DNA from: Cercozoa sp. M6MM
Lineage: Eukaryota > Protista > Endomyxa: Ascetosporea
NCBI GenBank assembly: GCA_040357565.1
Contig: JBDODJ010000053.1
Direction: 5' to 3' (one strand)
DNA: 64,000 nucleotides
The notes below the pieces were generated by a model that was not told where the DNA came from, did no database searches, and worked only from the letters and a program-made list of their open reading frames with translations. Below, one piece after another: positions 1,701-64,000 of the stretch (position 1 is the first letter of the stretch; each line of letters begins with the position of its first letter). The translations under genes were made by a program, and so were the position numbers.

Positions 1701-3724
1701 TTAATTCGTCACGGTGACGACCGACCACGGCAGCGTGGTTTCGGCAAAGAGCGGCACAACGACAGAGTCGCCGAAGGGCAGCTGCGCCGGCACCGCAAAC
1801 TCTTCCCGACGCAGGGTGACAGTGCCGTCCTGGTGTCCCAGCAGCAACCAAAACGTACCGCACTGTGTGAAGACAGACACAACTGCAACAAAAATACCGA
1901 GGACTGCGAGCGCGGCATGCCGTAGAAGTCAGCACCATTCTCGCACAGGAATGCACGCAGCTTCGCCTGTCCCTCCTGTGTCGACAAGTCCACTCCTGTT
2001 TTGCACACAGGTAAAATACAGAGAAGATGGCAAAGCAAGAAAGGATACCGGCCTGTTCGAAGGCAGTGGCGTACAACTGCAGAGCAAAAGGAGCGCTAAA
2101 GCAGCCGGCGCTGCAGCAGGACCTATCGAACACACAAACAAACAATCTCGAACTGCCAGTCTGGATCGATTCGACCAAAGTACGCGAGTTTGCGTTCGAT
2201 CGGATGAGGAGCCGAGTCAGTGCCTGTTGTCAGATATATGACATCTTCATTTTGCAGGTACCGCTGAAGACTTAGTTACCGGCAAAGAACTTCTTGTTGC
2301 CGGAACGGATCACTGTAGTTTACATCATAAACACAGCTGTTCGAAGACAATAACAAGGAAATGAAGAGCACCTTCCTGCAGGGCTTGGCGGTCTTCGTTC
2401 GTCTTGAGCACGGGCAAACTGCGATCACGAAAAGCATGTGAAGGAATCCCTTTCACTTCACTGTCCAATGACATCGGAGTACCAATAACGATGCGGTCGC
2501 AGGCCGCCCACAAACAGGTCGCTTCGCGTCAGTCTGCAGGGACATTGGCCATTCAAAGACAATTGAGAATGAAGAGAAAAACAAAAGTACAGCAGGTGCT
2601 GCGGCGTCAGGGTAGCCGCCACGTTTGGTCCTTCTGCTTGCGTGCAGTATGAGTAGACTAGCGCACACTCACAGGAAATGTACGCGCGTTCACAAAGTCA
2701 ACAGCAGCCTTGGTTGTGCAGTGCTCAACGACCACCTGTGCTCGCAGATCACCAAAAGCAGGACAAGTGAGCGCGAATCGGCAGGCACCTTCAGTTGCGG
2801 GTGACGCTGCACGACGCCTGTGAGGACAGTTTCGATAAAGACACGCTCGCGATCGAACAGGTCCACCGACGGCGTAGTCACCTGTCAAACAATGCCAAGT
2901 TCTCAAGCAGACTGACACCAGACCTAACAAGGTAAACCTCAGCGTGCACGAGGAGCAGCAAGCCGTGTTGTGCCATCGCGTCCAGCACACCTGTGATACC
3001 GATCACGGTGCCGTGCACATACACTAAAAGAGAGCCCTACCACGAGTAGACAGTGCCTCGACGTCGGTCACACCTACAGCAACGTTCGAGTGCCAATGAC
3101 AAACATGCATAAAAGGAGAGGCGAAAGCACCCGAGGAAGAGTTGGTGGTGGCGCCACTCGGGTACAGTTTGCAAGCAACCACTGCAGACACGACACAAAT
3201 CTATTCAACAAACACAAGCACAGCAACAAGAAACACCGCCATGCTGATTGGCCTCGGCAATATCCTCTGGTGTGGTTTCGTCCGTCAGGTACAACGACAT
3301 CAGTGGCGTGAACGAGTCCTTTGTCTGCACAAACTCAGCAGAGTACTCGTGTGTGTCTTGTGCAATGTACGTGCTCAAGGATGCGTTGCTTGTAGGCCAG
3401 GGCATCTTGTGCTGTTTACAAGATCGTAAAGCACAAGTCTGAAGCACAAACGGTTGAACTGAAAGCACCGTTGCGCACTGGCGGACGCAGGTTCGGCATA
3501 ATCTGCATCCATCAAAATAGTGCTGTCATAGGCAATTGGGCGCAGCATGAAGCCAACCAGGGCACGGCCAAAGTACTTTGCCGTCAGAGGAGCCACATCG
3601 CGCATCTAGCAGCAAAACAACCACAGGACAAGTTCCGACCGCTTGATCATAACGAACAAGGTACACGATCGCCGTCGCGAACGTGCAAGTGCAAGTCGTC
3701 CGGTCGCGGCAGCGTTATTTCCAT
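1701..3724 (-). CDS. pyrC: Dihydroorotase, homodimeric type II (PyrC/URA4-like), multi-exon
   Basis: Motifs across exons: MEITLPRPDDLHLHVRDG, KLYPSGATTNS, DLFDRERVFIE, VVVEHCTTKAAVDFV, FFAGTDSAPH, AGCFSAPFALQLYATAFEQAG, FLCENGADFYGMPR; ends LPWSVVTVTN*. Confidence 0.95.
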
Positions 3725-4005
3725 ATCCGTTTTCAATTACAACTAATAAAGGTTATCGGACAGTTTGAAAGCAGTGATTTGCGGCCCTGTCAGCAAAAAT
3801 ACAACGCGCCTTTAAATTTGAGCTGTAGCCAGCAAGGTTTCCGCTTCCTGCTTCTTCTGCTTTTCTTTCAGCAGTCCAGACGCGTTCAAAAAGCACTGAA
3901 CTTTTGTTTGGTTGTTTGAACACGTCAGAGCATCATAAAATTGCAAAAGCTCCGGTTCCTCTGTCTGACCAGCGACAATCTGCCTGGAAATCCTGCGACA
4001 CTATC

Positions 4006-7000
4006 ATGTCGCACGAACAATATTACGACGACTGGTGGACCGAAGAAGATGCGCTGGTGCCTTTCTCGTTCGACATGTTTTCCTTTGTCTTGTATACGAA
4101 TACTGGGGTCTGTGGGCAGGCAGCAGTCGAGAGAGGCACAGCGATCCGCGGAAAACTTCGTATCAACGCCAAGAACCCACTAAAGGCCAGTTTCGTTGGG
4201 CACAGCGACCCACGATACAACCGCGATGTCTATTTGGCTGGTTTGCTGTTTCTCGCTCTGCCACTTTTGGCTCGTTTACCTTCCGTTGTCCAGATTTGAA
4301 GGCGCGGAATCGTGCCTGTCATCACGATGAAGTTATTGTTTCGATCTCTCAGTGGCTGGAGTCTCCTGTTGGTACGTGTTGCGCTCTGTACTATGTAACT
4401 GAATTACCACCCGTCGCAACAGGTCAGCAGCCCCGTGGCCAAGTGGTTTACATTGCAAAACGCCACCGATTGTATTTCTCATCCTGTGTCGCAGAGATTT
4501 GATCTGTTCATGGCAATTATTCAGTGCGGAGGAAGGTCTGGGACGCATGTTCGGCCGAATTGAAAGTTTCACAAATGACGCAACTTTGACTACGGTGTGT
4601 TCTTAATGTGAGTGAGTGATAAGGATTGAGTGATAAGGATTGGATCGAATCTTGTCGTAGAGCAATTATGCAAGGTTTCGCCCACTTCTGCAGACTGCAC
4701 CGCAGGCCGTCGTTCCTGTACTTTCGTTTATTTTTCCGTACGCGTCGGTTTTTTACGATTGCCATCATTGGGGCAGGTCCGTCAGTTGCCGAAGGAGTAC
4801 GCAACTGATCCAAATTCTGACAAGAACAAATTTTTGGTGGCTGAAGTTCAATACTGCGACTGGACTCCCGAGAGTCGGTGTGTTTTGTCAACATAGCTAC
4901 ATTCATGTGCAGAATAAAATGTTTTATTTTTCCCTCAGTTGGCCGAAAGCCAATTTTGTTCGAATGGCCGGAAATGTTGGTACTCGCTTCTGCTCGCTTT
5001 CAGATGTTGATGCTAGTTTTATGCTTAATTGTGACAGGCGACATCGATACGGAAACCGACATACTTCTCGCGATGCACCAGGTATCATCTAACTTGCCCA
5101 TTCTCTGGTATGCCCGTATACGACTCCTTTGGTTGGCAGATCGACTGGACAGAGACCTTTCCGCCAGAAGTTGTTGATCAGGGTTTGGCATTGCTCTTGC
5201 TCGAGTTGGTTACTATTTTACGCAATTGTATCTAAATAGTGAACGCGTACTCGGAACGGTGGGAGATTCCTGCCGAAGAATTCGAAAACAGATGGTAAAC
5301 TTTCGCAAAATACCACCTTTTGAGCCGTTATCCTGTGCCTGCAGCGACCTTCGCGACATGTCTATTTTCACCATCGACCCGCCCACTGTATCTTGGCACT
5401 TTCGCTTCACTTGAAAATATCTCTCTGTTTTTTAACGGCTAGGCTCGTGACTTGGACGATGCGCTTTCCATTGTATGATAGCGCCCTGTCTACGCATCAC
5501 CATGCGATATAAATCTGTATTTATATTGTACAGAGACGAATCTCGGGCACGCGAGTCGAGCTCGGCGTGCACATTGCTGACTTGACGTACTTCATGCCAC
5601 TTCAATCGCCTGTACCGCTTCATATTATGTCTTTCGTTCAGTGTTTTTCTTTTTATCTTGATGCACGCAGCTGGACAAGGAGGCAGCCAAGCGCGCCACC
5701 ACCGTTTACCTCGTGCAAAAGAACATTCCGATGGTGCCGCGTGTGCTATGTGATCTGCTGTGCTCTCTGCACCCGCACGTTGACCGGTACTTAAGCTCAT
5801 ATGCATGCCAAGCACAATGCCCGATACGTTCCTTTGCTTAGACTGGCCGTCTCGATGTTTGTCACGTGCGACCTCAAGTAATCTACCTATGTGCCTACGT
5901 TGAACGCGAAGTATTGTTTGTCTGCTACGAAGGACGGGCGAGGTTGTTGGCGAACCGTGGTTTGGCCGTTCGATCGTATTATTCATTTGTTTCAGTGACA
6001 CTTGTGTGTTGAAATTTTCAAACTGGGTAGATCCGTTCAAGGGTCAAGTTGGATTACGAAACGGCACAGAAACTCATCGATGACACAGTACATTTAACGT
6101 TCTATTCTGGTCTCTTTATTACGCTCCTGTCCTGGCAAACAGGAGATGACGCAAGAGGAACGATCAAAATTCGAGGTAGCTTACTTGATGAAAATGAAGG
6201 AAGAACAGTGCTCAACGAACTTTTCAGCGAAAGGAGAACGACGAAACTGCAACTTTCGCTGTTGATTGGCCTCAGGTATTCTTGGAACCGATTGCGCACC
6301 GCGGTGTTGTCTGACTTGCTTGTTTAGATTGCAAATGCGTGCAAACTGATGCATCGACTGGCCGTGGTGTTGCGGCGCAATCGTTTCCAGGGGTATCCAA
6401 CCATCGCTTTTCCGTTTGCATATCCGAAAACACTATTTGCGCTTTTCCGTTTGCAGTGGTGCGCTTGCGCTGGACAATGCCGAGATCAAGTTCAAGCTCA
6501 ACGATGAGGGTATTTATATTGCGTTGTGTACAGGTTGTGATTGGCACTTTATGTACAGGTCTGCCGTGTGAGGTGACGGACTACCCGATCTTCGAGTCCA
6601 ATCACCTTGTTGAGGTATTCCGTGACAGATGCGCTCGAACGTACCACTTTTATGCCTGCTTTGATTTATTCCATAGGAATGCATGCTATTGGCTAACATG
6701 TGCGTCGCCAAACGTCTCAAGGCCAAGCTGCCTCAGCGTGCTTTGCTCCGGTTAGTCATTTTGTGTACGAAGGACACACACTTTTTGACTTATTCTGACT
6801 TGACGTGTGTGCAGACGCCATCAGCCGCCGAATCCGCTGGGCATTCGCAAGATGCAGGATTTGCTGAAGGTAGCATGTGCCACTGCTGCTCCTGCTGTTT
6901 GACACATCAACGTATGTTTGCCTGATCAGATGATCAATCTGAATGTCGACTTTGGCAGTGCGAAAGCACTGTCCAACTCATTGCACAAACTTGAGGTACT

Positions 7001-8533
7001 ACTTTTGACTGCCGCTTCTGCTTTCAATGTGATTTTGGAGGATGTAAAAACAGAACCTTCCTGCTTTGAGCGGCCACGTGCGTGTGCGCTCACTTGTCGA
7101 ATTCCTGCTGACGACACCCATGCAGCAGGTACGACTCTCTTTGTCATTTTTGCTGAGATAAACGCTTGCGTCTTAGGCCGAGTACGTTTGCTTCGGCGCC
7201 ACGAACGCAGAAGGCGTACCTTAAGTCGTGTTGCCTGTGTATGCCGTACAGACACCTATGTTTAGGAGGAGATGGATGAGTCCAGTGTGCGACACTATGC
7301 GCTGAACACTCCTGTACGTTTGATGTGCAGCATTTGGTGTGCTTCTGTTTCTGTTCATCCCATATCTTTAGTTGTACACGCACTTTACTTCGCCAATTCG
7401 ACGCTACGCGGACGTCCTCGTTCACCGGGTACAGCTCGTCGTACCTGTGTTAGGGGATGTGTTTACGTGCTAAACTGCAGTCGCTGTTGTACACCGTGAG
7501 TGACCAGTCGGAGAACGTTGACGAGGTGCTTGATCTTTTCGTCTGCATCTGTTTGTGTCACGTTGAGGTATATGCGCAGGTCGTGGCGTCGCCACAAAGA
7601 ATGCAGGCCCAAGCAGACAACTGCAATTACCGCAAGATGAACGCTGATGCCGCGCAAATCCAAAGTACGCGTGTCCCCTACTTCGCGTCTAAGAAATACC
7701 GATTTTTGACTCTGTGCAGGCAATGAAGTGTTCTTGCTTTCGCTGCTGTCTGCGCGTCCCCTGCGACAGTTTGGTGTCCTCACCGATATTGGGTATATTT
7801 ACCCTTTTTCTGTATTGTATCTTGCGTGAGATGCATGTTTGCCGCAGACCAAAATCGTGCACTATCGCGTTGCCCGATTTCGCGTTGCTCAAGCGTGTCA
7901 AGTCTGTTTTTTTTTTTTTTTTTTTTTGTTTGTTGGCATGCTTTGTGCCAACTTGAAATTTCGCAGGTTTGATGACCTGGCACGATGGACGCGTGAAGGT
8001 GACGTCCCTCCGCTTGATTACGCGCAGGTTCTGTACGATGGTGAGCCATCGTCGATGAACGCAGGCAGTCACAGCACGAGCGCGAGCAGCTACAGCACCA
8101 GAAGTACGGCAGTTGTATTCTTTCCCTGTGCGTGGAAGATCATGTTTCCGTGCTCGCAGGCAAGAAACAGGACAAGCGTGGTCGCGACAAGGGCAGAAGC
8201 AAGAAGTCGAAACCGACTCCCGCTGAGGCGCATGCCAACGCAAAGGGTGTTCCACACTTCAACGATGCCTGTGTTGTTGTCTGTATACGTGCCATATGCG
8301 TCCGCGCAGAGGAGAAAGAGGTTCGCAAGCAACTGCAACTCGTTTTCGTCGACGGTACTGAGCGTCGCGTCGACATTATGGGTTGGCCACAAGTCTCTGC
8401 ATTTTGTGCTGTGTTGTGTTGAGGTGTGTCCCTTTTGTACATTGGCTATTGGACTGCAGGCGTGTTCCCCGTACTGTTGGGATGCCAGCCGGGTGTTCCG
8501 ATGACCATGAGTATTGCGCCGCTCAAGAATTAG
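4006..8533 (+). CDS. DIS3L2: DIS3-like exoribonuclease 2 (RNase II/R family, no PIN domain), multi-exon
   Basis: [128 protein letters not shown]. Start and stop are best estimates. Confidence 0.9.
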
Positions 8534-9303
8534 TGCGAGCGCTTTGTGCTTATCGCATTGCTTCGCTTGCTTGGGGGGCTTTCAGTCGGTCACGCGAAGT
8601 TCCGCGCGTCCGGTCAGGTCGCCAAAATTGAATTTCTAAACGTATACTAAGTTACTTCCATAGTTTCTGTACATTCGACTGTCCTGTCAGCGAGTAGTCA
8701 GTGGAACAGATCTTGCTCCTTCACCCATTCCACTTCGATCTGCGGGTTTTGACGTAAAATGAGCTTAAAGTACTTGCCTGCAGGGCAAACTACAGAACAC
8801 ATGCTCTTGCCAGCCAGCTCAACATTCTTAAGGCAAGGAGAAGACTTACAAGCTCCCCAATTCAGCGCGATGACCTATCTTGGTGGCGGCGTCGCTGGCG
8901 GCGGCAGCTCGAGCGTTTGCAGAGGAGTCGACAATACCACTGCGGAGTCAACGGGGGTTCAAAGCTCGCTCACGGGCTGCGAATGTCGCCGTCGCGTTGC
9001 AACGACGGAGACAAGGAAGCTCACCCGCGAACATGAACGTCATCACTCGTCTCTAGTCTGTTGCTACCGTACGCTTTTTGTATAAAATTTAGTGTTGTGG
9101 AAAAGTTGGTCGTTTCTGGCCAGCTCTGTTCACCGAGTCGCTCAATGACACAGTTTGGAATCTCAATTGTACGCGCGACGGAACAGGCCATATATCGATG
9201 GAGAGAAATCACACAATTCTGTACAGTAGGAGCGGCAACTAGTTTGTTCGACACGTACAACGATGCCGACGCTGGGCCGTTTCGACAGTGTACACGTTCA
9301 GTT

Positions 9304-11008
9304 TTACTGGCCGGCAAGCTTGGCCTCGAGCTCGGCGATCTTGGCCTGCGCCGCGGCGAGCTCCTCCTCGAGCTGCTCGTACGACTTCTTGGCCACGAAG
9401 GTAGCGGCGGCTGCACCCATAAATAAAGGATGCATATAAATCATACATACAGCACACAAAAGAAGGCAACACACCCGAGGCACCAGCGCCGTCGGTGCGC
9501 TTCTCCGGGTCGAGCGAGGTCTTGATGACCTCCTTGCTGGCACCGCCAAAGTACTCCTCGGCCGTCATCGACGGCACGCCAGCGTACGTGTCCGGGAAGA
9601 TGTCGTCCTGGAAGATATCGGCACCCGTCTTGCGCGGCACGCGCATCGACACCGGGGCCACCGTGTCGCGCGTGAGGCGCAGGAAGCGCGCGATCTCGCA
9701 GTGCGTCGTGTCGCAGGCGCGCTTGGGGATCCACGTGAGGCCCTTCTGCGGCGTGCTCGAGCGGAAGTTCGCCAGGTGGTACACGCCCGTCGAGTCGACC
9801 TCAAAGTAGCGGATGTCACCGCCACCCTTACCGGCCAGGTAGAGGATCGACAGGTCGTTGTCGTAGAACGGCAGCAGCACCGACGCCGACTGATCGAGGT
9901 CGACCGTGCGCACCGGACCTGCATGAGCAAGCAGACACATCAACAAGCAGACATAGATAGGACTATGTAGGGGTGAGGACGAAGGTACCGCCCGAGAGGT
10001 TGCGCGGGTCCCAGAACTTGATGCGACGCTGCGAGGTGCGCGTGAAGCCGACGGCACCCACGAGGTTCTGGGCGCCGCAGTGGAAGACGCGCGCTGACTT
10101 GGTGCCCGAGAACGAGTCGGCGATCTGCACGGCCTCGGCCTGACGCGGGTCGTACAGACGCACCTTCTTGTCCTTGCACGACGCAAAGATCTGCGAGCCG
10201 TCGTCTGAGAACTCGTAGGACTGGATCATGTCGCCAAAGTCGCCGTACGACAGCATCTCGGCCTGCTTCTCGATGTCCCACAGCTTGATCGTGCGGTCGA
10301 ACGACGCCGACGACAGCACCGAGTTGGCCGTCGGGTTGAACTTCACGAACATCACCTTCTTCGTGTGGCCCTTGCACGTCACCGCAGCCTCCGTCACGTG
10401 CTCCGTGAGGCCGGCTGTCGAACACGCACACACACCCAAACATAACATACAGTGCAAGGACAAGGACATCGACACAGAGGAGGAAGTACTCGACGGGAAC
10501 TGCGAGACCTTGACGGCGCAGTCCTCACCACCGGTGGCGATCATGTTGCCAATGAACGGGTGGAACGCCATGTCGAGCACCTTGGCGCGGTGCACGTTGA
10601 GCGTCGGGTGGTTGATCGACAGGCGGCCCGGCTGGTCGAATCGCTGGATGATCACGGGACCACCGCCACCCTGCTTGGCCACGGCGAAGAACTCCGTGTT
10701 GGCGGCAATGTACGTGCCCTCACCGACCGTCGAGGCCTTGATGTCCGTGTAGCATTGCTCCGTCTGCACAGAAATCACACAATAAAGTGCGACCACACAA
10801 CAGATCGAGCGTTTTGACTCACCTTGTACTCCTCGCCAAAGACGTGGCGGAACTTGGACGCGCGAACAAAGCTGCACACAGGAAAACATACACACACACG
10901 TGAGTCGAGCAAACGCAGAGACACGGCACAAAAAAGTATCCGTGGGTCAAAGGCGAAAACTGACAAACAGCATCGCGGCCAATGGAGGGCTCATTACCTG
11001 CCGGACAT
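9304..11008 (-). CDS. Coronin (WD40 actin-binding protein with C-terminal coiled coil), 6 exons
   Basis: FVRASKFRHVFG, HRAKVLDMAFHPF, GHTKKV..FNPTANSVLSSAS, LPFYDNDLSILYLAGKGGGDIRYFE, PQKG..PKRACD, PVSMRVPRK..DIFQDDIFPDT, coiled coil LEEELAAAQAKIAELEAKL*. Confidence 0.95.
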
Positions 11009-13598: not shown

Positions 13599-16581
13599 GT
13601 GTGTGCGTGTGTGTATGTGCACCTTGTTCTCTGTCCAAGCAGACAGGGCCACGCACTCGACATGGTGGTCGACATCACGTGCGACATCGAAGGCTCGGTG
13701 GAGGCGCTGTCGCACAGCACGCAGATCGAGGCGCCTTTCTTCACCTACAATCCGGCCACCGGCAAGGAGAGCGCCGGCGTCACCGGCAAGGGCACCTGCT
13801 TCCTGGCAGGTGGGTATGCAGATACGGCCTGTCGTATCCCCAGAGAGAGGTGATTGTGCACATGCTATGCTTGGGCAGTGGACAACCTGCCGACCGAGCT
13901 GCCGAAGGAAGCGTCCGAGTCCTTCTCCAATGCGCTGACGCCGCTTGTTCCGGGTACATTTGGACCGTGTGTTTGGACTGTGCATTTGGACTGTACATTT
14001 GGGACAGGACTGGCCCAGTGGCAGCTGTCGCCGGAACTCTCCAAGGCGCTGATCACGCACGAGAATGCGCTGACCGACGACTTTGACTACATCACCGAGT
14101 TGCGCAAGCACGTCAAGGCCACGCCGGTCTTCCTGCCGTCCACTCGGTACCGGTTGTACCTCTGTGTTGTACTTGTCCCAATGTACATTTGTACTGCGAC
14201 AGACGCGTGGTCGTCCTGGGCTCTGGTATGGTGTCGGCCCCTCTGATCGAGTACCTGCGAGGTGAGCACTACGACGTGACCATTGTGTCCGACGATGTCG
14301 ATGCGCGCAAGCTGCTCGCCAAACGGTAGTCTTTCTTCTCTCTCTGCCTTGTGTAGTTCGACTGTGTATGTGTACCTTTTGAGCACAGGTACGGCTGCTC
14401 GCAGGTGCATCTGCGAGTTGGCACCGACGACAAGCTGTTGCAGAAGGTAGTGTGGCCATGTGTATCTGTATAGATAAGGCGTGTGTATGTTGTGCAACAG
14501 TTGGTACGAGAGCACGATGCAGTGGTGTCGTTGCTGCCTGCGACGGCTCATGTGGTACCTTCTTGCCCCCTCCCAGGTGCCCTCTTTACTCTTTTGGTGT
14601 TGCACAGGAGGTCGCCAAGAAGTGTGTCGAGAACAAGCGGCACCTCATTACGGTAGACTACTTGTGTGCGTGTTCTCACACTTACCTCCCGTATGGTCTT
14701 GTTGTTCCACAGGCCTCATACGTGTCGGACGGCATGCAAGGTCTGCATGAGCAAGCCCAGGCACAAGGCATTGCCCTCATCAACGAGGTCGGCTTGGACC
14801 CTGGTACGTCGGCCCTTGTGCGTGCGTGTGTGTGTGTGTTGCATTGTCGTTGTGGCGATGCAGGACTGGACCACATGTCGGCCCAGCAGGTGATCGACCA
14901 CGTCAAGATGCAAGGCGGCCGTGTGCTCTCGTTCGAGTCGCTCTGCGGCGGTCTGCCGGCGCCGGCCTTTTCCGACAATGCCTTGCAGTATGTCTCGGCT
15001 TTGCTGTCTGTTGTCTGTACTGATTTGGGTGCTGTGCTTTGACAGGTACAAGTTCAGTTGGAGTCCGCGTGGTACTTTCAATGCATGTGACCGTTTAGGC
15101 GCTGGTTGCTACACACCTTTTTGCTTAGGTGTGCTGACTGCTGCCACCAACGCTGCACAGTTCCTGCGGTACCCTTGCATTTTGTATTCACGTCTCTAGG
15201 TGGGTACCCATACATGTGTATGTGCGCAGACAAGGACAGGTGCTTCAAGTGCCCGGCAGTGACTTGCTGTCGCACGCAACGCCCATCACTATTGGTACTC
15301 TTCTTGCGAATGTGTGTGTGAGTGTACCTGTCTGAATTATCTATTGACGACGACAAACGCTACCATATGTAGGCGGCATGAAGTTGGAACACATCCCAAA
15401 CCGCAACTCTCTGCCCTACGGTACCAAGTCACTTGCAATTGTGGTCAGTGCGAACATGCGTTTCTGCAGGCAAGGTGTACGGCATCGAGGATGCGCACAC
15501 TGTGTTCCGTGGTAACTAGTCTTGCTTTCATGTGAAAGTAGCAAACGTAGTGTCTACTTTAACAGGCACGCTGCGCTACGAGGGCACCTGTCGCCTGATG
15601 CACGCGTTTGCCAAGTGTCAGTTGCTGTCGCAAGAGTCGCTGCCGGAGGTTCATCTCTTTTTTTTTGTGTTAGTTACGAGGTGGTTTCATTAATGGGTGT
15701 TTCAAAGGGCACGACTTGGCGCGAGTTCCTGTCCAAGCAGAACGTTGATGAAGTCGCCAAGGAGGTACCTTGTTCTCACACACGTGCTTTCCGCGTTTGT
15801 TATTTGTTCGCTTTGTAGGCGTTGGACTCCTTCGGTGTCTGGGACAGCGACCTGGTGTGTTTGTTTGTAACACATATATGTGTACCCTATGGGGTCTGCC
15901 GAGCAGGAGATGACGGAGACGCCGCTGGACTCGTTGTGCGCTGTGCTGTTGCAGCAGCTCGCCTATGCGCCTGGTATGTCACTAACTTGTATCCGCGCGG
16001 ATGCTGTGTTGGCACTCTTGAATAACATCGCTGCAGGTGAGGAGGACATGTGCGTCATGCAGCATCGTTTCGAGGTCGAGGACAAGGCCGGCCAGAAGTC
16101 TCTCATCACGTCGTCTCTCGTGCACACTGGTGCCTTCGGAAACCCACCACATTTTCACTTTTAAAGAGTGTGGCAGACTTCTCTGTTCGCAGGTGTTGTC
16201 GGTGACATCGAGAAGCACTCTTCCATGGCTCTGACGGTACCTTTGCATGTGCCTACTGGTCTGTCTTGTGTACCGGTATTTGTCGACAGGTCGGCATGCC
16301 AACGGCAATCGCGACGGACCTCTTGTTGAAGGAGTGCATGTCTCGCCGGTATCCCGTGTTTTCGTTTTGCCTTTCTTATGGGTCCTGGGGGCGCATGCTA
16401 AACCTATATGGGTGCGCGTTTAGTGGTGTGGTGCTGCCGAACCGTGCTGACCTGTACGAGCCCATTCTCGGACGCATGGCCGCTGCTGGTACCTACGTCT
16501 TAGGATAAAGACGTTGGGTACGTTTCGATATTTGTGTTTTTTGCAGGTGTCGAGTTCCAGGAGGAAGTGCATGCATTGTAA
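11435..16581 (+). CDS. AASS: Bifunctional lysine-ketoglutarate reductase/saccharopine dehydrogenase (alpha-aminoadipic semialdehyde synthase), multi-exon
   Basis: MRGNGVVGILRE-VKNKWERRVPLVP, FSHTIKAQP-ENMPFLD, RLVAFG-EYAGLAGMVDGLRG, DITCDIEGS, VDNLPTELPKEASESFS, VVLGSGMVSAP, NEVGLDPGLDHMSA, SFESLCGGLP, YKFSWSPRG, GTLRYEG; ends EVHAL*. Confidence 0.95.
13490..13619 (+). repeat. Intronic (TG)n microsatellite with 10-N gap (AASS)
   Basis: Seen directly. Confidence 0.95.
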
Positions 16582-56479: not shown

Positions 56480-56489
56480 NNNNNNNNNN

Positions 56490-58229: not shown

Positions 58230-58303
<74 letters not shown>

Positions 58304-58555: not shown

Positions 58556-60658
58556 TTTGTTAGTTTGTTACAGACTGACTCAGATTATGCATTCTCCGCG
58601 GGGATAAACCGAACCCAGACCCCGTGATACAGGGGTCTAGAATGGTCTAGAATAATCTAACACATTTCTAACATTCTAGGATTTCTAGGCTGACTCTAGA
58701 AATCACAGAACGGGTAGAAAGCGCTAGAAATGGGTCGAAAATTCACGGACTTGTACCCCACAAAACGGTCGAACGACTTTAAACCCTGGTTTAGAAAACA
58801 GCAGCCCGCATCACAGTACAGCGTGCAGTGTTTCGAGCACTGTAACCTGCTTAGAACGCTATACGAGCAAAATAAATTGAGGAGTCAAGAAAAACAGTTA
58901 TAGGGGGTTATAATACCTTCCTCGTTGTTCGCGTAAGCAGCCTGTCGAAGCTTCGGTTTTGAGGACCGCCGTCTTCGTCTCGCGCTGTTTAGCCTCGTCT
59001 GCGGATACAGTGAATGAACCCGTCGGTTTGACCGTACAGTACAGTACTGTACGTTACCTCCTGGGAGTTTAAGTACGCCCTCTGACAAGTCTACCTCGTG
59101 CATTGGCTTCTGCCAAGTCGGTGCCTCAAAGGGAGCGTCTTGCTATCGTTGCTCCTCCTCCTCACTGTCCATGTTCGCGAGTTGCGCTTCTATTTGGTAG
59201 GCCACATCGGGTTGCAAATTCACATCGTCGTCGAACTCTTCCGAACTCGAGTCGTCGCTCACCCCGACGAAACCCACACGGATATCAAGTTGTACTCTCG
59301 TTCTCTCCGTGTATGCTGTCAATGATTCGCTGACACTCCCGACGTTCGGCCGCCTATCTCTGCCGTCGCTCCGCATGATCCCCATTCTCCCTGTTGGCAT
59401 CATCTCGCCCGCCTCATCCGCATTCGCGCTCAACTGCTTCAGAGTCACTTTCGCGCATCTCCGCTCTCGATGTAACGTCTTCCTGCGTGGGGACGGTGGT
59501 CTATGGCGTATCCGCCGATACATCGTTTGGCATCAGCACAGGAATCACCGACGCGACCGTGCAGCTGGACATCTTCTCAGATTCTCGCGGTATCTTTCAA
59601 CATTCCTTTCATTTCGCCTTGCCGACAAATTGCCACACCTACAGAAGAGACAGTGAGCAGTCTCTCCCTAAAACGAGACTGCTGCAGGGATTGTTGACGC
59701 CAAGGGAGTCTGCGAGGGCGCGTCGTGGACGATTTTGCACCCCAACGACGCATGTTTGACGGCTTCAGGTCGCCAAGCTTCAACGTTCTGAGAAGACTGA
59801 ACTGACTCGAGTAAATTACTGACTACAGTAAATGACCTAACTCGATCATCGTATAAAATGTATAATTATTTTATTCTACGACACCCGATTGTATAACGAA
59901 ATGGACCGTACCTACGCACTATAGTTACTGTACATACGTAGTTTCGCAATGAACAATGAAGTACAGGAAGACAATAGGTTCACACAACAACACAGAGCCG
60001 TGATACAGCAGGAGAACAACCGGATCAAGCAAATTAAACTATTGTAAATTTAAAATACATCTACGATTCGATACGGATCGAGTTGCGATGAAATGATGCT
60101 TGTTAACCTGTAGAGTAATTTCTGCTGACCTACTGGTTTAGTGCGTCACTATTAACAAGCACCACGTGGCACTGCCCGGGTTGCTCTAGGTAGCAGCACC
60201 ACGACCTGGAGTTGTTGCCAGGCGTTGTTTTCGCCCTGGCAACGACCTCAAGCTCGCTCGCGAAAATGCACGACACGCTCGCGCCACATGAGAGCTATGA
60301 TTGCCACTATCTCTCCATACTCGCTTCTGCTAGTAACAGTCGATATTTACCTCCCAACAGGGGGTGGGGGGCACGAGAGCGCGAGACGCGCATGATCGTT
60401 GTTGCAGGCTCAGCGGCGCTGGGCTCAGCTCGCCTGCCTGCCTGCCTGCCTGCTGCTCCAGTCGCACCAGCTTCGCCTGCTCGCCGGGTGGCGAAGTCCG
60501 TTGGCCAAGTCCGTTGGCCTTGGTAAATATAGAATTATTGTGCGGCGGTGGGGTTCGAACCCGCTGGGTGATTGAGTCGGCGGCCGCCGACTTTGGTGCC
60601 TACCAGGTGGCCCAAGGCGGGTGTGTGTATCGTTGCATCGTCGCGGCTTTGTCGTAGT

Positions 60659-60730
60659 ATTCCTATGGTCTAGTGGTGATGACATTGGACTTTGAATCCA
60701 ATGACCCGGGTTCAAATCCCGGTAGGACCT
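60659..60730 (+). tRNA. tRNA-Gln(TTG); first two acceptor pairs mismatched
   Basis: Anticodon arm TTGGA-CT-TTG-AA-TCCAA, T arm CCGGG-TTCAAAT-CCCGG; acceptor ATTCCTA/TAGGACC. Confidence 0.8.
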
Positions 60731-60835
60731 CGCTGTGTGTGTTTTTGGCTTTTTAAGTTACTTTGACTGCCCCCCCCCCCCCAGCACCCCACGGGGCAAG
60801 GCGAGGGGCGCGAAGTGAGGTAGACACAAGCGAGA

Positions 60836-60908
60836 GTCCTCGTGGCCCAATGGATAAGGCGCCTGACTACGAATCAGGAGATTGTGGGTTCGATCCCCAC
60901 CGAGGATG
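60836..60908 (+). tRNA. tRNA-Arg(ACG)
   Basis: GTCCTCG/CGAGGAT acceptor, CCTGA-CT-ACG-AA-TCAGG, GTGGG-TTCGATC-CCCAC, T-run downstream. Confidence 0.93.
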
Positions 60909-60997
60909 CACTTTTTGTGTTTTTTTCACTAGTCCCCTCTGCGGTGGGTTGGTTGGTTGGTTGGGTGGCATGTCGCCAGTGTACCTGCAGTGTATTG

Positions 60998-61070
60998 GCC
61001 GTCTTAGCTCAGTTGGTAGAGCAGTAGACTGAAGATCTAAAGGTCCCTGGTTCGATTCCGGGAGATGGCA
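60998..61070 (+). tRNA. tRNA-Phe(GAA)
   Basis: GCCGTCT/AGATGGC acceptor, TAGA-CT-GAA-GA-TCTA, CCTGG-TTCGATT-CCGGG. Confidence 0.93.
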
Positions 61071-61096
61071 CACTGTGTGTTTTTTGTTTTTTTTTG

Positions 61097-61182
61097 CCCT
61101 GGCCCTTTGGGCCCCTGCCCTGGCCCCTGCCCTTACCCCAGTCCCCCCAGTCCCCTACCCCAGTCCCCTTACCCCAGTCCCC
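61097..61182. repeat. C-rich/G-rich short tandem repeat (GCCCCT / ACCCCAGTCCCC units) between tRNA-Phe and tRNA-Thr
   Basis: ccttaccccagtccccccagtcccctaccccagtccccttaccccagtcccc seen directly. Confidence 0.85.
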
Positions 61183-61195
61183 AAAAAAAAAAAGG

Positions 61196-61267
61196 AGCTC
61201 CCAGTGGGGATCGAACCCACGATCCCTCGCTTACGAAGCGAGTGCTTTGCCGCTAAGCTATGAGAGC
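61196..61267 (-). tRNA. tRNA-Thr(CGT)
   Basis: Reverse complement: GCTCTCA/TGGGAGC, CTCGC-TT-CGT-AA-GCGAG, long T terminator. Confidence 0.93.
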
Positions 61268-61281
61268 CTTGGCTTGAGAGA

Positions 61282-61354
61282 CACCCCCACCGAGACTCGA
61301 ACTCGGAATCCCAAGCTTAGGAGGCTTGTGCCTTATCCATTAGGCCATGGAGGC
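61282..61354 (-). tRNA. tRNA-Arg(CCT)
   Basis: Reverse complement: GCCTCCA/TGGGGGT, CAAGC-CT-CCT-AA-GCTTG, CCGAG-TTCGAGT-CTCGG. Confidence 0.93.
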
Positions 61355-61387
61355 GGAGTGTGGCAGTGGACACCTGGGAGGCAAAAG

Positions 61388-61459
61388 AGGAGCCAGCCGG
61401 GATCGAACCGGCGACCGCAGGATTTGCAATCCCACGCTCTACCGCTGAGCTATGACTCC
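61388..61459 (-). tRNA. tRNA-Cys(GCA)
   Basis: Reverse complement: GGAGTCA/TGGCTCC-U73, TGGGA-TT-GCA-AA-TCCTG. Confidence 0.92.
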
Positions 61460-61510
61460 TGCTACTACGTCTGTCTGTCGGTCAGTCGGTGTAGCACAGC
61501 AACGACACAA

Positions 61511-61583
61511 GTCTTCTTGGCGCAGTTGGCAGCGCGTGGGTCTCATAATCCCAAGGCCGCGAGTTCGATCCTCGCAGAAGGCA
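61511..61583 (+). tRNA. tRNA-Met(CAT), elongator
   Basis: GTCTTCT/AGAAGGC, TGGGT-CT-CAT-AA-TCCCA with the U31:U39 typical of eukaryotic elongator Met, TTCG T-loop. Confidence 0.93.
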
Positions 61584-61597
61584 CTTGTAAATTTTGT

Positions 61598-61670
61598 GCT
61601 CGATTGGCGCAGTCGGCAGCGCAGTGGTCTTATGAGCCACCGGTCGCGAGTTCGATCCTCGCATCGAGCA
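61598..61670 (+). tRNA. tRNA-Ile(TAT), intron-less
   Basis: GCTCGAT/ATCGAGC, GTGGT-CT-TAT-GA-GCCAC, GCGAG-TTCGATC-CTCGC. Confidence 0.92.
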
Positions 61671-61695
61671 TCCCCCCTCTTTTTGTGTTGGGCTC

Positions 61696-61755
61696 TTTCC
61701 CAGGCAGAGTGCACATTTTGCCAGGCAGAGTGCACTTTTTCCCAGGTAGAGTGCA
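61696..61755. repeat. 21-bp tandem repeat x3 (CCAGGYAGAGTGCAC..TTT) between tRNA-Ile and tRNA-Ala
   Basis: Three near-identical units seen directly. Confidence 0.85.
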
Positions 61756-61803
61756 GGCAGTTCCCTTGCTAGATTTCCTCCTAGCCCCCAGGGGCAAAAA
61801 AAG

Positions 61804-61876
61804 TGGAGAATCCGGGTTTCGATCCCGGTGCCTCGTCGTTGCTAACGACGCACTCTTCCGATTGAGCTAATCCCCC
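61804..61876 (-). tRNA. tRNA-Ala(AGC)
   Basis: Reverse complement: GGGGGAT/ATTCTCC-A with G3:U70, CGTCG-TT-AGC-AA-CGACG, ATCGAAA T-loop. Confidence 0.94.
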
Positions 61877-61970
61877 AATCACTCTGTGAGAGCAAGTCAG
61901 CAAACTGCACTATATACTGGCTGGGGCCAAGTCAGGCGGGCCTGGGGGTAAGTAAGTAAGGCAAAAAAGG

Positions 61971-62043
61971 AGCCTCTTGCGGGTTTCGATCCCGCTACCT
62001 CGTCATTACTAATGACGTGCTCTGCCAATTGAGCTAAAGAGGC
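61971..62043 (-). tRNA. tRNA-Thr(AGT)
   Basis: Reverse complement: GCCTCTT/AAGAGGC-U73, CGTCA-TT-AGT-AA-TGACG, ATCGAAA T-loop. Confidence 0.92.
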
Positions 62044-62101
62044 CAGCAATGAGCACTTGGCGCTACAGTAGCCCACGGCATACGGCATACGATAGAAGGC
62101 T

Positions 62102-62183
62102 GGACGGATGGCCGAGCGGTCTAAGGCGCTGGTTTTAGGCACCAGTCTCCACGGAGGCGCGAGTTCGAATCTCGCTCCGTTCA
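62102..62183 (+). tRNA. tRNA-Leu(TAG)
   Basis: GGACGGA/TCCGTTC, CTGGT-TT-TAG-GC-ACCAG, long variable arm CTCC-AC-GGAG. Confidence 0.94.
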
Positions 62184-62199
62184 CACCCCTTGCTTTTTT

Positions 62200-62256
62200 G
62201 GGCCTGCCTTGGCCTTGGCCTTGGCCTGTTGCCTGGGCCAGGCCTCTTGCCTGGGC
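62200..62256. repeat. (GGCCTT)n-like STR between tRNA-Leu and tRNA-Thr
   Basis: ggcctgccttggccttggccttggcctgttgcctgggccaggcctcttgcctggg. Confidence 0.75.
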
Positions 62257-62265
62257 AACCAGTAC

Positions 62266-62337
62266 GCCGGCGTAGCATAGTGGTAGTGCATCTGCCTTGT
62301 AAGCAGAAGGTCGCGAGTTCGATCCTCGCCGTCGGCT
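62266..62337 (+). tRNA. tRNA-Thr(TGT)
   Basis: GCCGGCG/CGTCGGC-U73, TCTGC-CT-TGT-AA-GCAGA. Confidence 0.93.
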
Positions 62338-62355
62338 TTCGTTTTGGCCAAAAAG
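62338..62355. terminator. Shared Pol III terminator between convergent tRNA-Thr(TGT) and tRNA-iMet
   Basis: Palindromic TTTTGGCCAAAA supplies a T-run on each strand. Confidence 0.6.
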
Positions 62356-62427
62356 TAGCGATTCGAGGTTTCGATCCTCGGACCTTTGGGTTATGAGCCC
62401 AACACGCTTCCGCTGCGCCAAATCGCT
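62356..62427 (-). tRNA. Initiator tRNA-Met(CAT)
   Basis: Reverse complement: A1:U72 (AGCGATT/AATCGCT), GGG/CCC anticodon stem, ATCGAAA T-loop. Confidence 0.95.
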
Positions 62428-62547
62428 TTACGTTGTCTTGACCTGGGATACTATTGCTGGCCATGTCAGGGCTGGGCTGCTCCGATTGCAGGCCCCGACC
62501 CCAGCTGACCAGAGACACACCCTGCCACTGGCTTGGTAGCTCATACA

Positions 62548-62619
62548 GCTCCCGTAGTCTAGTGGTTAGGACTCTACGTTGTGGCCGTAGCAACCCGGGC
62601 TCGAATCCCGGCGGGGGCA
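62548..62619 (+). tRNA. tRNA-His(GTG)
   Basis: GCTCCCG/CGGGGGC-A73, CTACG-TT-GTG-GC-CGTAG; T-loop reads CTCGAAT (C54); no encoded G-1. Confidence 0.88.
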
Positions 62620-62697
62620 CTTTTTTTTTTCTTTTTGCCTTGGCTGTGTGGCACAGGCAAAGCCCAGGCAAAGCGCAGGTAAAACAAGGGCAAAAAG

Positions 62698-62770
62698 TTC
62701 CCCGCCCGGGATTTGAACCCGGGTCTTTCGGGTGAAAGCCGAATATCCTAACCAACTAGACTAACGGGGA
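62698..62770 (-). tRNA. tRNA-Glu(TTC)
   Basis: Reverse complement: TCCCCGT/GCGGGGA, TTCGG-CT-TTC-AC-CCGAA. Confidence 0.93.
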
Positions 62771-62862
62771 TGCAGTCTACAGCACCTCATTGCATGCATG
62801 CATCCCACACTGCATGGGCAGCGACCCAAAAGACCTGCAAATCTGCTTCGCAGCAAAAAGAG

Positions 62863-62944
62863 CGTCAGCAGCCAGATTCGAACTGACGAGGGCGATGCCC
62901 ATGTGATTTCGAATCACACGCCTTAACCACTCGGCCATGCTGAC
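62863..62944 (-). tRNA. tRNA-Ser(CGA)
   Basis: Reverse complement: GTCAGCA/TGCTGAC-G73, TGTGA-TT-CGA-AA-TCACA, long variable arm GGGC-ATC-GCCC. Confidence 0.94.
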
Positions 62945-62998
62945 ACAGTGCTTACTGTGTCCATCGATGGCACCTCATACACTCTAGTTGGGCCAGTC

Positions 62999-63265
62999 AG
63001 TGGGAAGTCAAAGGGACTTTACTGGGAAGTCAAAGGGACCTTACTGGGAAGTCAAAGGGACCTTACTGGGAAGTCAAAGGGACTTTGCTGGGAAGTCAAA
63101 GGGACCTTACTGGGAAGTCAAAGGGACTTTGCTGGGGGACTATTGGGGAAGTCAAAGGGACTTACCGGGGGACTTACTGGGGAAGTCAAAGGGACTTCAC
63201 TGGGACTTTACCAGGGACTTCACTGGGACTTTACCAGGGACTTCACTGGGACACTTGTTGGGACT
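62999..63265. repeat. G-rich minisatellite: 22-bp unit CTGGGAAGTCAAAGGGAC(C/T)TT(A/G), decaying into an 11/12-bp GGGACTT unit
   Basis: GGGAAGTCAAAGGGAC occurs 8 times, six of them at exact 22-bp spacing (63002-63112). Confidence 0.9.
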
Positions 63266-63550
63266 TTCCAGGGCAAATTTTTTTGGTGAATCGCCAAGGG
63301 AAAACCTAAAGGGAAACGTGTGTTCCACTAAAGGGAACTTAGTGGGACTTTGCTGGGAAACGAGTGTTTGTTTGCTGGGACAAGCCTGGGGTAAATTTTT
63401 GATTGACTTTTCCAAGGGGAAAAATTCAAAGGGAAACGAGTGTGCAATTAAAGGGAGTTTACTGGGAGTTTACTGGGACACTTTGCATTTCTGTTGGGAG
63501 GCTGGCAGGCTGCACAGCAAAAGTGCAAAAGGCAAAAACCAAAAAAAAAG

Positions 63551-63622
63551 CTCCAGGCCGGGGAATTGAACCCCGGGCTCCTGCGTGACAGGCAGGGATG
63601 TTACCAACTACACCAACCCGGA
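63551..63622 (-). tRNA. tRNA-Asp(GTC)
   Basis: Reverse complement: TCCGGGT/GCCTGGA-G73, CCTGC-CT-GTC-AC-GCAGG. Confidence 0.93.
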
Positions 63623-63715
63623 TTGCACTGGTATCGCCAATAATACATTTGGGACATAGCAGGTTGCATAGCAATTGCTCGGGAACAGCCTAGGGCAAAA
63701 CAAAGCAAAGAAGGC

Positions 63716-63835
63716 GCATCGAACACCACGCGATTCCCAGGTGGTCCCCCACCCTAGTACTAAGCGGGCTCAACAGAGCTTAACTTCGGAATTCGGAATG
63801 GGATCCGGTGTGTTCTCTGTGATATGGTCCGATAC
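63716..63835 (-). rRNA. 5S rRNA
   Basis: Reverse complement GTATCGGACCATA..CACCGGATCCCATTCCGAATTCCGAAGTTAAGC..TTAGTACTAGGGTGGGGGACCACCTGGGAA..GTTCGATGC; about 120 nt, terminal helix I pairs. Confidence 0.95.
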
Positions 63836-64000
63836 ACTTGCCTAGGTTGTGGCACTTTGACTAGCCCCCTCGCCTCGCCTAGCCAGCACAGGACCGTTGC
63901 AAGGTTAAAGGGAAATGACTGTTCAATTAAAGGGAGTTCACTGGGACTTTGCTGGGAAACTCTGCATTTTTTGTTGCACACTTCCCAGGGTGGAAATTCT

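Follow-up and report, generated by a model that had tools for sequence, protein, structure and literature searches.

A tRNA and 5S rRNA gene cluster of Lemnamoeba sinaloensis and its probable derivation from a ribosomal DNA spacer

The last kilobases of contig C53 hold tRNA genes of many different species beside a 5S rRNA gene, which raises the question of whether such a cluster is an ordinary local grouping or part of a larger repeated unit. The contig belongs to the genome deposited as Cercozoa sp. M6MM, now Lemnamoeba sinaloensis, a marine amoeba (Rhizaria), and the window analysed here is a stretch of 64,000 nucleotides whose position 64000 is the terminus of C53. This organism is haploid, with homozygosity above 99%, and has been assembled from long reads into six chromosomes and 9 small contigs outside these, with 461 nuclear tRNA genes and simple repeats that are very abundant genome-wide (PMC13746701). 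The assembly analysed here is a short-read draft with scaffold-overlap artefacts; gene content, physical linkage on contigs, copy identity, a cut edge and the absence of dispersed copies were read from it directly. A match to the telomerase RNA-binding domain is also present in the genome. The reading favoured here, with a probability of roughly 70%, is that the cluster represents a left-cut chromosomal copy of the distal third of a Pol III gene island in the spacer of multi-copy ribosomal DNA (rDNA).

Gene content of the cluster

A scan of the whole 64-kb window with ARAGORN located 17 tRNA genes on mixed strands (8 on +, 9 on -) between 60659 and 63622, each of a different species and each with the anticodon listed in the initial annotation, while the 60 kb ahead of the cluster contained no tRNA. 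Together with the 5S gene the set lies entirely within 60659-63835, a span of 3177 bp that is 44% genic. Rfam supports all 17 genes at 51-72 bits, and the probability that 17 random draws from 46 species would all differ is 0.034. The cluster had been proposed to start at 60540; yet the stretch 60540-60658 holds only a tRNA-like relic (60540-60625), which is rejected by ARAGORN and Rfam and accepted as a tRNA by no tool.

From the left, the series opens with tRNA-Gln(TTG) (60659-60731, +), followed by tRNA-Arg(ACG) (60836-60909, +; T5 terminator at +3), tRNA-Phe(GAA) (60998-61071, +; T6 terminator at +9), tRNA-Thr(CGT) (61194-61267, -; T11 terminator at +1), tRNA-Arg(CCT) (61280-61355, -) and tRNA-Cys(GCA) (61387-61459, -; T4 at +1). 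Both types of tRNA-Met are present as annotated: the elongator (61511-61584, +; T4 at +8) precedes tRNA-Ile(TAT) (61597-61673, +; T5 at +7) by 12 bp, and the initiator (62355-62427, -; T5 at +1) is recognized by the hallmarks A1:U72 and an ATCGAAA T-loop. Between these two groups lie tRNA-Ala(AGC) (61803-61876, -; T7 at +1), tRNA-Thr(AGT) (61969-62043, -; T6 at +1), tRNA-Leu(TAG) (62102-62184, +; T6 at +10) and tRNA-Thr(TGT) (62266-62337, +; T4 at +5), and beyond the initiator follow tRNA-His(GTG) (62548-62620, +; T10 at +1), tRNA-Glu(TTC) (62697-62770, -; T5 at +1), tRNA-Ser(CGA) (62862-62944, -; T5 at +3) and tRNA-Asp(GTC) (63550-63622, -; T9 at +1). A full-length 5S rRNA gene (63715-63835, -; Rfam 105 bits) closes the series, and the remaining 63836-64000 constitutes the start of an array of ~112-bp spacer subrepeats.

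A run of at least four T within 11 nt downstream accompanies 16 of the 17 tRNA genes, a Pol III-type structure which, together with the intact cloverleaves and internal boxes, is consistent with independent Pol III genes. The individual genes would form separate Pol III units, each having promoter boxes inside the gene and a T-run that ends transcription. Arg(CCT) departs from this pattern: it lacks a T-run, and since Thr(CGT) begins 12 bp downstream on the same strand, the two probably yield a two-gene transcript; the same perhaps applies to Met and Ile(TAT). The short tandem repeats previously noticed in the spacers were likewise recovered, as tandem repeats account for 14.7% of 60400-64000 versus 4.5% of the rest of the window, although simple repeats abound throughout this genome. 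The 605-bp spacer between Ser(CGA) and Asp(GTC) (62945-63549) is composed of GGGACTTTACT-family subrepeats with unit lengths of 11, 22, 23 and 34 bp.

The ribosomal DNA unit carrying the island

The wider context of the cluster is provided by two further contigs. C314 carries 18S (864-2720), 5.8S, 28S (3476-7118) and 5S (7891-8011) genes along with 31 tRNA calls, and is gap-free up to 14186, such that the 5S gene, 773 bp past the 28S gene, is linked to it by uninterrupted sequence in the manner of L-type rDNA. C1320 matches the end of C314 with 98.7% identity over 387 bp and the window cluster with an overlap identity of 94%; the window's own 5S gene is linked to rDNA only via this C1320-C314 overlap. 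The composite of both contigs, whose join rests on the 387-bp overlap, measures at least 18.4 kb and combines the rRNA genes with a pair of oppositely oriented 5S genes and 43 non-redundant tRNA species. Its order is 18S, 5.8S, 28S, a 23-bp subrepeat array, 5S(+), 10 tRNA genes, 2 kb of subrepeats, 33 tRNA genes of which the final 17 are the window set, 5S(-) and the ~112-bp subrepeats. Subrepeats of the GGGACTTTACT family are also found beyond the 5S gene and in the 2 kb devoid of tRNAs (C314 9696-11541), and an inverted subrepeat copy lies upstream of the 5' ETS. The unit is the rDNA repeat itself, with 18S-5.8S-28S directly upstream of the 5S/tRNA island, and the island would accordingly occupy the intergenic spacer of the L. 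sinaloensis repeat.

With wobble reading, the 43 species suffice for all 20 amino acids and for both types of Met, and the probability that each would occur once in the unit by chance is ~3e-15. The tRNA-Tyr gene contains an intron, and CCA is not encoded in the unit's tRNA genes. The window 5S gene matches that of C1320 at every position; the compensatory pair C17T/G62A sets it apart from the post-28S 5S gene of C314. The initial annotation was right in placing the cluster within a larger unit with nearly the whole tRNA set plus 5S, none of the species being duplicated. Its geometry has to be reversed, however: the window does not hold the left end of the unit but the distal third of the island, cut on the left in tRNA-Gln, and what lies to the right, where the remaining species had been expected, is spacer subrepeats, while 26 other tRNA species (29 with Gln-TTG, Arg-ACG and Phe-GAA) lie upstream of Gln in the complete unit.

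In the assembly, rDNA is represented by one full (collapsed) copy only, and no contig joining the 5S(-) side to the 18S side was found among the assembly contigs. The draft contains artefacts around gaps in both contigs: in C314, duplicated Ala-TGC/Gln-TTG genes flank a 100-N gap, and in C1320 a 90-bp duplicate flanks a gap. Such artefacts would suit an ordinary single-copy local cluster, with alleles or assembly duplicates making up the extra contigs and a misassembly accounting for the rDNA link. This reading is highly improbable, given a haploid organism of more than 99% homozygosity, a count of 461 tRNA genes in the long-read assembly (PMC13746701), outer flanks that differ among the five edges described below, and a 28S-5S-tRNA stretch that is free of gaps and has its subrepeat families in common with the window. 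These families are found in the 28S-5S interval, within the tRNA island and at 63001-63480 of the window, which argues against a chimeric join.

Copies, cut edges and gene dosage

The window and C1320 agree completely in all 16 shared tRNAs (16/16) and in the 5S gene; several repeat-free spacers are 100% identical as well, and the differences are located in repeat-bearing spacers. The window copy is a paralogue. Concerted evolution would keep such copies alike in their genes while the length of repeat-bearing spacers is free to drift.

Homology to the internal unit begins at nucleotide 3 of tRNA-Gln(TTG), to the left of which the window copy is joined to unique DNA. The Gln-TTG gene of the initial annotation is present, but its two acceptor pairs are broken in the window copy, which has A1/T2 versus G1/G2 internally, and its Rfam score is 59.9 bits at the edge versus 74.5 bits in the internal copy; the edge gene is probably damaged. 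The adjoining edge segment of 226 bp (60433-60658) is near-identical on C53, C58, C889, C1230 and C1514. Besides the tRNA-like relic it includes a (GCCT)n repeat and a 13-mer repeat, and it bears no resemblance to Ala-TGC, the gene located ahead of Gln in the internal unit. Further out the flanks differ: 59669-60432, which opens with a dispersed SINE-like repeat of 135 bp (59673-59808), is common only to the end of C58 (93% over ~1 kb), so that left-flank sharing between edges ranges from 226 bp to ~1 kb. An STT3 exon lies near the cut edge on C58. The occurrence of the same cut edge on four other contigs implies that the junction has been duplicated and now occupies at least five chromosomal sites. 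In the favoured reading, a break at nucleotide 3 of tRNA-Gln(TTG) would have placed the truncated unit next to 60 kb of ordinary genes, and the edges would most simply represent inner borders of several arrays.

Alternatively, each edge could open a stand-alone dispersed partial copy, a 3.4-kb module reaching from the cut Gln to 5S and segmentally duplicated to at least five sites, with a little left flank moved along and rDNA linkage confined to the C314/C1320 version. Five edges with one breakpoint and yet with shared left flanks of 226 bp to ~1 kb would fit such a history. So would C1445, where a different section of the island is partially present in decayed form, and the many small unit fragments scattered genome-wide, which indicate that pieces of the rDNA-tRNA unit do move. 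Against it, no contig carries a right-hand junction of post-5S subrepeats with unique DNA, the only matches being fragments of 55-130 bp on C177 and C1770; the window genes are 100% identical to the internal copy whereas the isolated C1445 copy has decayed; and the final 165 bp of the window are 99% identical to C1320, where the ~112-bp subrepeats continue for 398 bp beyond the window's end point. We consider this explanation unlikely.

Dispersal of the unit's species elsewhere, named beforehand as the contrary outcome, was not found in the assembly. BLAST of the whole assembly with the cluster DNA as query returned no intact extra copies of the 17 species, and the short cluster fragments found elsewhere are not tRNAs. 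The only others found outside the unit were Val-TAC (at least 5), one Lys-TTT, one Ile-AAT, tRNA-Sec and one decayed four-gene copy. In the whole-genome tRNA scan with Rfam, 63 of 499 candidates were scored and 49 of the 64 cluster genes already known were retrieved (~77% recall), which leaves room for a few dispersed tRNAs to have escaped notice. The presence of at least six Gln-Arg-Phe starts in a haploid genome bears out the earlier proposal that the block exists in several copies, and the published count of 461 tRNA genes, about ten times the 43 species, suggests roughly 8-10 units per haploid genome. As to the equal dosage also proposed, the 43 species do occur once per unit, but strict equality is broken by the at least five cut edge copies, which add extras of the 17 species, and by the dispersed Val-TAC genes.

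Extrachromosomal rDNA is found in Entamoeba, Naegleria and Dictyostelium. For L. sinaloensis, a complete unit that is circular or palindromic, with the window and the four other edges as chromosomal relics or chromosome-end copies, would accord with the two oppositely oriented 5S genes, the inverted subrepeat copy upstream of the 5' ETS, the 9 small contigs besides six chromosomes (PMC13746701) and the Dictyostelium rDNA palindrome sequences that also occur at chromosome ends (PMC6759168). Neither a palindrome centre nor a circular junction was found in the contigs, and the same data fit ordinary chromosomal arrays. We consider an extrachromosomal unit improbable.

Within the favoured reading, we infer a tandem order of units, their copy number and borders, transcription, and a position of the unit in the nucleolus-forming region. 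The dosage of rRNA, 5S RNA and nearly all tRNAs would consequently be tied to one amplifiable unit. More tentatively, essentially the whole translation-RNA set of this free-living or amphizoic amoeba, i.e. 18S, 5.8S, 28S, two 5S variants and 43 tRNA species once each, might be contained in one repeated unit whose arrays border at least five chromosomal sites by an identical cut junction, possibly as the subtelomeric ends of the six chromosomes. If so, it would constitute a second, independent invention of what is known from Entamoeba for tRNA arrays and from Dictyostelium for rDNA, and tRNA supply would depend on promoter strength and on the number of rDNA copies instead of gene number per species.

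Significance and comparison with known systems

Most eukaryotes have their tRNA genes scattered, in copy numbers that follow codon use. A recent review describes dispersed tRNA singletons as nearly exclusive in protists (PMC13578239). Our literature search found no report of tRNA genes in a eukaryotic rDNA spacer and no description, for any eukaryote, of a near-complete tRNA set beside 18S-28S; the rDNA-tRNA organisation is not mentioned in either published genome paper on the organism. With nearly every tRNA species present once per rDNA unit, Pol I and Pol III translation genes would be amplified and homogenised together and presumably placed together in the nucleolus. The linkage also explains the paucity of tRNA genes in the draft assembly. 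In yeast, tRNA genes cluster at the nucleolus, and whether such clustering can be hard-wired in DNA is testable here, as is the coexistence of dense Pol III genes with rDNA replication and transcription. Moreover, a small, haploid, culturable organism lends itself to testing how tRNA levels are tuned under flat gene dosage.

Linked (L-type) rDNA, e.g. of Saccharomyces, holds the 5S gene in the intergenic spacer of the Pol I unit, with which it is co-amplified. The L. sinaloensis unit likewise has a Pol III gene in the Pol I spacer, yet this spacer holds two opposed 5S genes and 43 tRNA genes. In Entamoeba, almost all tRNA genes reside in repeated units, some with 5S and all with spacers full of short tandem repeats that differ from copy to copy, whose homogenisation is ascribed to concerted evolution (PMC2652664; bioRxiv 10.64898/2026.07.06.736064). 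Similarly, nearly all tRNA genes found here at ~77% scan recall sit in the unit (43 species), and the spacer short tandem repeats vary between copies. On the contrary, Entamoeba has 25 unit types with 1-5 tRNA genes each instead of one type with 43 species, its rDNA is on a separate episomal circle whereas the tRNA unit is physically joined to 18S-5.8S-28S here, and the lineages are unrelated (Amoebozoa versus Rhizaria).

Mixed-strand clusters of different tRNA genes with T-run terminators, sometimes including 5S or other Pol III genes, are shared with trypanosomatids, whose clusters however comprise 2-10 genes (one has 13), are numerous in each genome, have no link to rDNA and do not form a one-of-each set (PMC2695483). 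Membership in a kinetoplastid cluster was rejected, given an unfragmented 28S, an 18S of 1.86 kb and the placement of the organism in Cercozoa. Several chromosomal junctions of unique DNA with rDNA-type repeats, as seen here, are known from the rDNA-derived chromosome ends of Dictyostelium (PMC6759168) and from the subtelomeric rDNA clusters of Yarrowia (PMC8515841); unlike the unit described here, the units of both are without a tRNA set.

A succession of large rRNA, 5S and a long run of different tRNAs may finally be likened, by analogy only, to bacterial rrn operons. That of Bacillus subtilis, 16S-23S-5S plus 21 tRNAs, is co-transcribed from a single strand, whereas the L. sinaloensis island is distinguished by mixed strands, Pol III terminators and the eukaryotic features of its genes, namely initiator A1:U72, the Tyr intron and the absence of encoded CCA.

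Gene content of the window cluster

All 17 tRNA genes that ARAGORN detected in the 64-kb window lie within 60659-63622, eight on the plus and nine on the minus strand, each with a different anticodon, and all 17 were confirmed by Rfam with scores of 51-72 bits. They are accompanied by a full-length 5S rRNA gene on the minus strand (63715-63835; Rfam, 105 bits). Both types of tRNA-Met are represented: the initiator (62355-62427, minus) displays A1:U72 and an ATCGAAA T-loop as hallmarks, while the gene at 61511-61584 (plus) is the elongator. In 16 of the 17 genes, four or more consecutive T residues occur no more than 11 nt downstream; the remaining one, tRNA-Arg(CCT), is devoid of a T-run and precedes Thr(CGT), which lies on the same strand, by 12 bp. 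The proportion of sequence in tandem repeats is 14.7% for 60400-64000, compared to 4.5% for the remainder of the window. The initial annotation, which had described 17 different tRNAs and a 5S gene with repeat-bearing spacers, was thus correct. Two details require amendment: in the Gln(TTG) copy, two pairs of the acceptor stem are broken, and 60540-60658 is merely a tRNA-like relic, its candidate at 60540-60625 being rejected by ARAGORN and by Rfam even at E = 1. Scanning the cluster for bacterial promoters and terminators is not applicable to Pol III genes.

The window represents positions 5334-69333 of its contig, C53, and ends where the contig ends. The draft assembly comprises 23.67 Mb in 2244 scaffolds with 52.8% G+C (PMC11069148); strain M6MM has since been renamed Lemnamoeba sinaloensis, for which a long-read assembly of 27 Mb in six chromosomes exists (PMC13746701). 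Neither genome paper states where tRNA or rRNA genes are located (PMC11069148, PMC13746701). Within the window, a 10-N gap interrupts a (TG)n tract at 56480-56489, near an (AT)15(TG)16 stretch at 58235-58296, in agreement with the published statement that the draft assembly is broken by simple repeats. Furthermore, exons of a coronin gene (DUF1899, WD40, WD40_4) were recognized at 9239-10931 on the minus strand; one of them shows 90% identity, over the aligned portion of the query, to an NCBI protein of Cercozoa sp. M6MM.

A ribosomal DNA unit carrying 43 tRNA species

The context of the cluster emerged from contig C314 (15,008 bp), which harbours 18S (864-2720), 5.8S and 28S (3476-7118) rRNA genes, followed on the strand of the 28S by a 5S gene (7891-8011) and then by 31 tRNA calls between 8106 and 14901. 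The series closes with Gln-TTG, Arg-ACG and Phe-GAA, the same three tRNAs with which the window cluster begins. The path from 28S via 5S into the tRNA genes is free of gaps, the sole N run being located at 14186-14285. An apparent duplication of Ala-TGC and Gln-TTG on C314 was rejected as real, as the pair occurs on either side of this 100-N gap with 99% identity and a fold-back; the doubling is a scaffold overlap artefact. The end of C314 overlaps with C1320 (3769 bp; 98.7% over 387 bp), which contains the same 16 tRNA genes and 5S gene as the window in reversed orientation. The resulting composite of 18,391 bp encodes 43 distinct tRNA species serving all 20 amino acids and both Met types, with an intron in the Tyr gene; Val-TAC, Gly-CCC, Arg-CCG and Sec are missing. 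No further small RNA genes were found in the tRNA-free 2-kb part of the unit.

Subrepeat families are shared between the 28S-5S interval and the tRNA island (C314 9696-11541 and 12428-12654), and the same families recur in the window in the Ser-Asp interval (63001-63480) and beyond the 5S gene, which argues that the island belongs to the rDNA spacer rather than resulting from a chimeric join. Between the two 5S genes of the unit (L001:7891-8011 on C314 and 63715-63835 in the window) there are only two differences, C17T and G62A, which seem to compensate each other within a single helix. A kinetoplastid origin, suspected from strand skew, was ruled out by a normal 18S, an unfragmented 28S and the taxon name. 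The large block with nearly the whole tRNA set that the initial annotation had postulated is borne out in substance by C314 and C1320, with the qualification that this block is the rDNA repeat. The cluster does belong to a large unit, not as its left end, but as its distal part in a cut edge copy.

Edge copies, probable array borders and dispersed genes

The window and the internal copy on C1320 are 94% identical overall. Identity is 100% for all 16 tRNA genes compared, for the 5S gene and for several repeat-free spacers, and the differences consist of length changes in repeat-bearing spacers. Since cells of L. sinaloensis are haploid and >99% homozygous (PMC13746701), the two are paralogous copies that are kept alike in their genes. 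Homology to the internal unit starts within tRNA-Gln(TTG), at its nucleotide 3. Leftwards, the internal unit continues with Ala-TGC, whereas the window carries a 226-bp segment without similarity to that gene, preceded by repeat-rich DNA and then by ordinary genes. This breakpoint recurs, together with the 226 bp, at the ends of C58, C889, C1230 and C1514. The outer flanks beyond the segment differ between the edge contigs, so that the minimum is five cut edges plus one internal copy. Apart from an STT3 exon close to the edge on C58, a 66-kb contig, Pfam yielded no matches in the flanks of the small edge contigs. The similarity between C53 and C58 begins with a SINE-like dispersed repeat of about 135 bp (59673-59808 in the window), which lacks a tRNA or 5S head and occurs on other contigs in 30 or more copies that are 75-87% identical.

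Searches of the assembly from both ends found no contig that links the minus-strand 5S gene, with its subrepeats, to the sequence preceding 18S, the only matches being inverted ones of 14 nt, and a metagenome scan with a 30-mer adjoining the 5S gene returned no matches. The window copy could be either a stand-alone partial copy or the border of an array; owing to its perfect gene identity and the lack of a right-hand junction contig, an array border is favoured. The long-read assembly contains 461 nuclear tRNA genes (PMC13746701), about tenfold the 43 species of the unit. Subtracting the five edge copies, with 17 genes each, and some dozen dispersed genes from this published count would leave roughly 8-9 full units.

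In BLAST searches of the whole assembly, full-length matches to the window cluster and the C314 island were confined to the cluster contigs, and matches of 45-140 bp on about 20 other contigs are not tRNA genes. An Rfam scan of the assembly found 64 tRNA genes; as only 63 of its 499 candidates were scored and 49 of the 64 known cluster genes were recovered, it may have overlooked a few dispersed genes. Outside the clusters it yielded five identical Val-TAC genes, one Lys-TTT, one Ile-AAT and a decayed four-gene copy on C1445. Val-TAC is the one common tRNA species missing from the rDNA-linked unit. Its genes (L007:1054-1127 and 1491-1564; L008:1085-1158; L009:1013-1086; L010:1044-1117, in coordinates of the fetched loci) have unrelated flanks and their own terminators, and some 100 bp upstream all five feature the motif TTGGCCCATG, which the cluster lacks. 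tRNA-Sec likewise lies outside the unit, on C1865. Equal gene dosage, as initially proposed, holds only approximately, because window-type edge copies and dispersed Val-TAC depart from it.

The decayed island copy on C1445 (Glu-CTC, Leu-TAA, Leu-CAA, Gly-GCC; L005:1685-2312) is 79-94% identical and scores 35-60 bits in Rfam versus 55-68 bits for the array copies. A solitary full-length 5S gene on C1219 (L016:1348-1468; 97.9 bits) shows about 20 differences from the array 5S, several of them paired, and may constitute a second functional 5S type. The assembly contains a single full rDNA copy, alongside many small rDNA fragments on other contigs: stretches of 45-990 bp from 18S, 28S, ETS, spacer and tRNA island, with 78-100% identity, are dispersed over many otherwise unrelated contigs (for instance C647:6222-7189, C168:23328-23618, C11:15578-15818, C521:6725-6929 and C2148:1-144). 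C2148 combines part of 18S with a piece of Arg-CCT/Cys and edge-flank sequence in a mosaic.

Canonical telomeres were not found in the long-read genome, for which a TAAGGG(G)n motif near contig ends was proposed (PMC13746701). In the draft assembly this repeat has 519 matches, compared to four for the reversed control, mostly in contig-internal positions (e.g., C11:25841-25937 and C33:82525-82572), and none in the fetched cluster loci; as a link to telomeres it is uninformative. A replacement of telomeres by the arrays is without support, given a match to the telomerase RNA-binding domain on C278 (L030, 11126-11413) with 35.7 bits, above the Pfam cut-off.

Comparison with known systems

In rDNA of the yeast type, the 5S gene is located in the spacer. 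In Entamoeba, almost every tRNA gene belongs to one of 25 types of tandem unit with one to five genes each, where spacers are filled with repeats and some units include 5S (PMC2652664); the rDNA resides on a separate episomal circle. In trypanosomatids, Pol III genes form mixed clusters with 2-13 members (PMC2695483), and in Dictyostelium sequences of the rDNA palindrome occur at chromosome ends as well (PMC6759168). A near-complete one-of-each tRNA set joined to rRNA genes in one unit distinguishes L. sinaloensis from all of these systems, and our literature search found no report of such a unit. The L. sinaloensis unit is thus related to two known kinds of organisation: repeated arrays of Pol III genes and linked rDNA.
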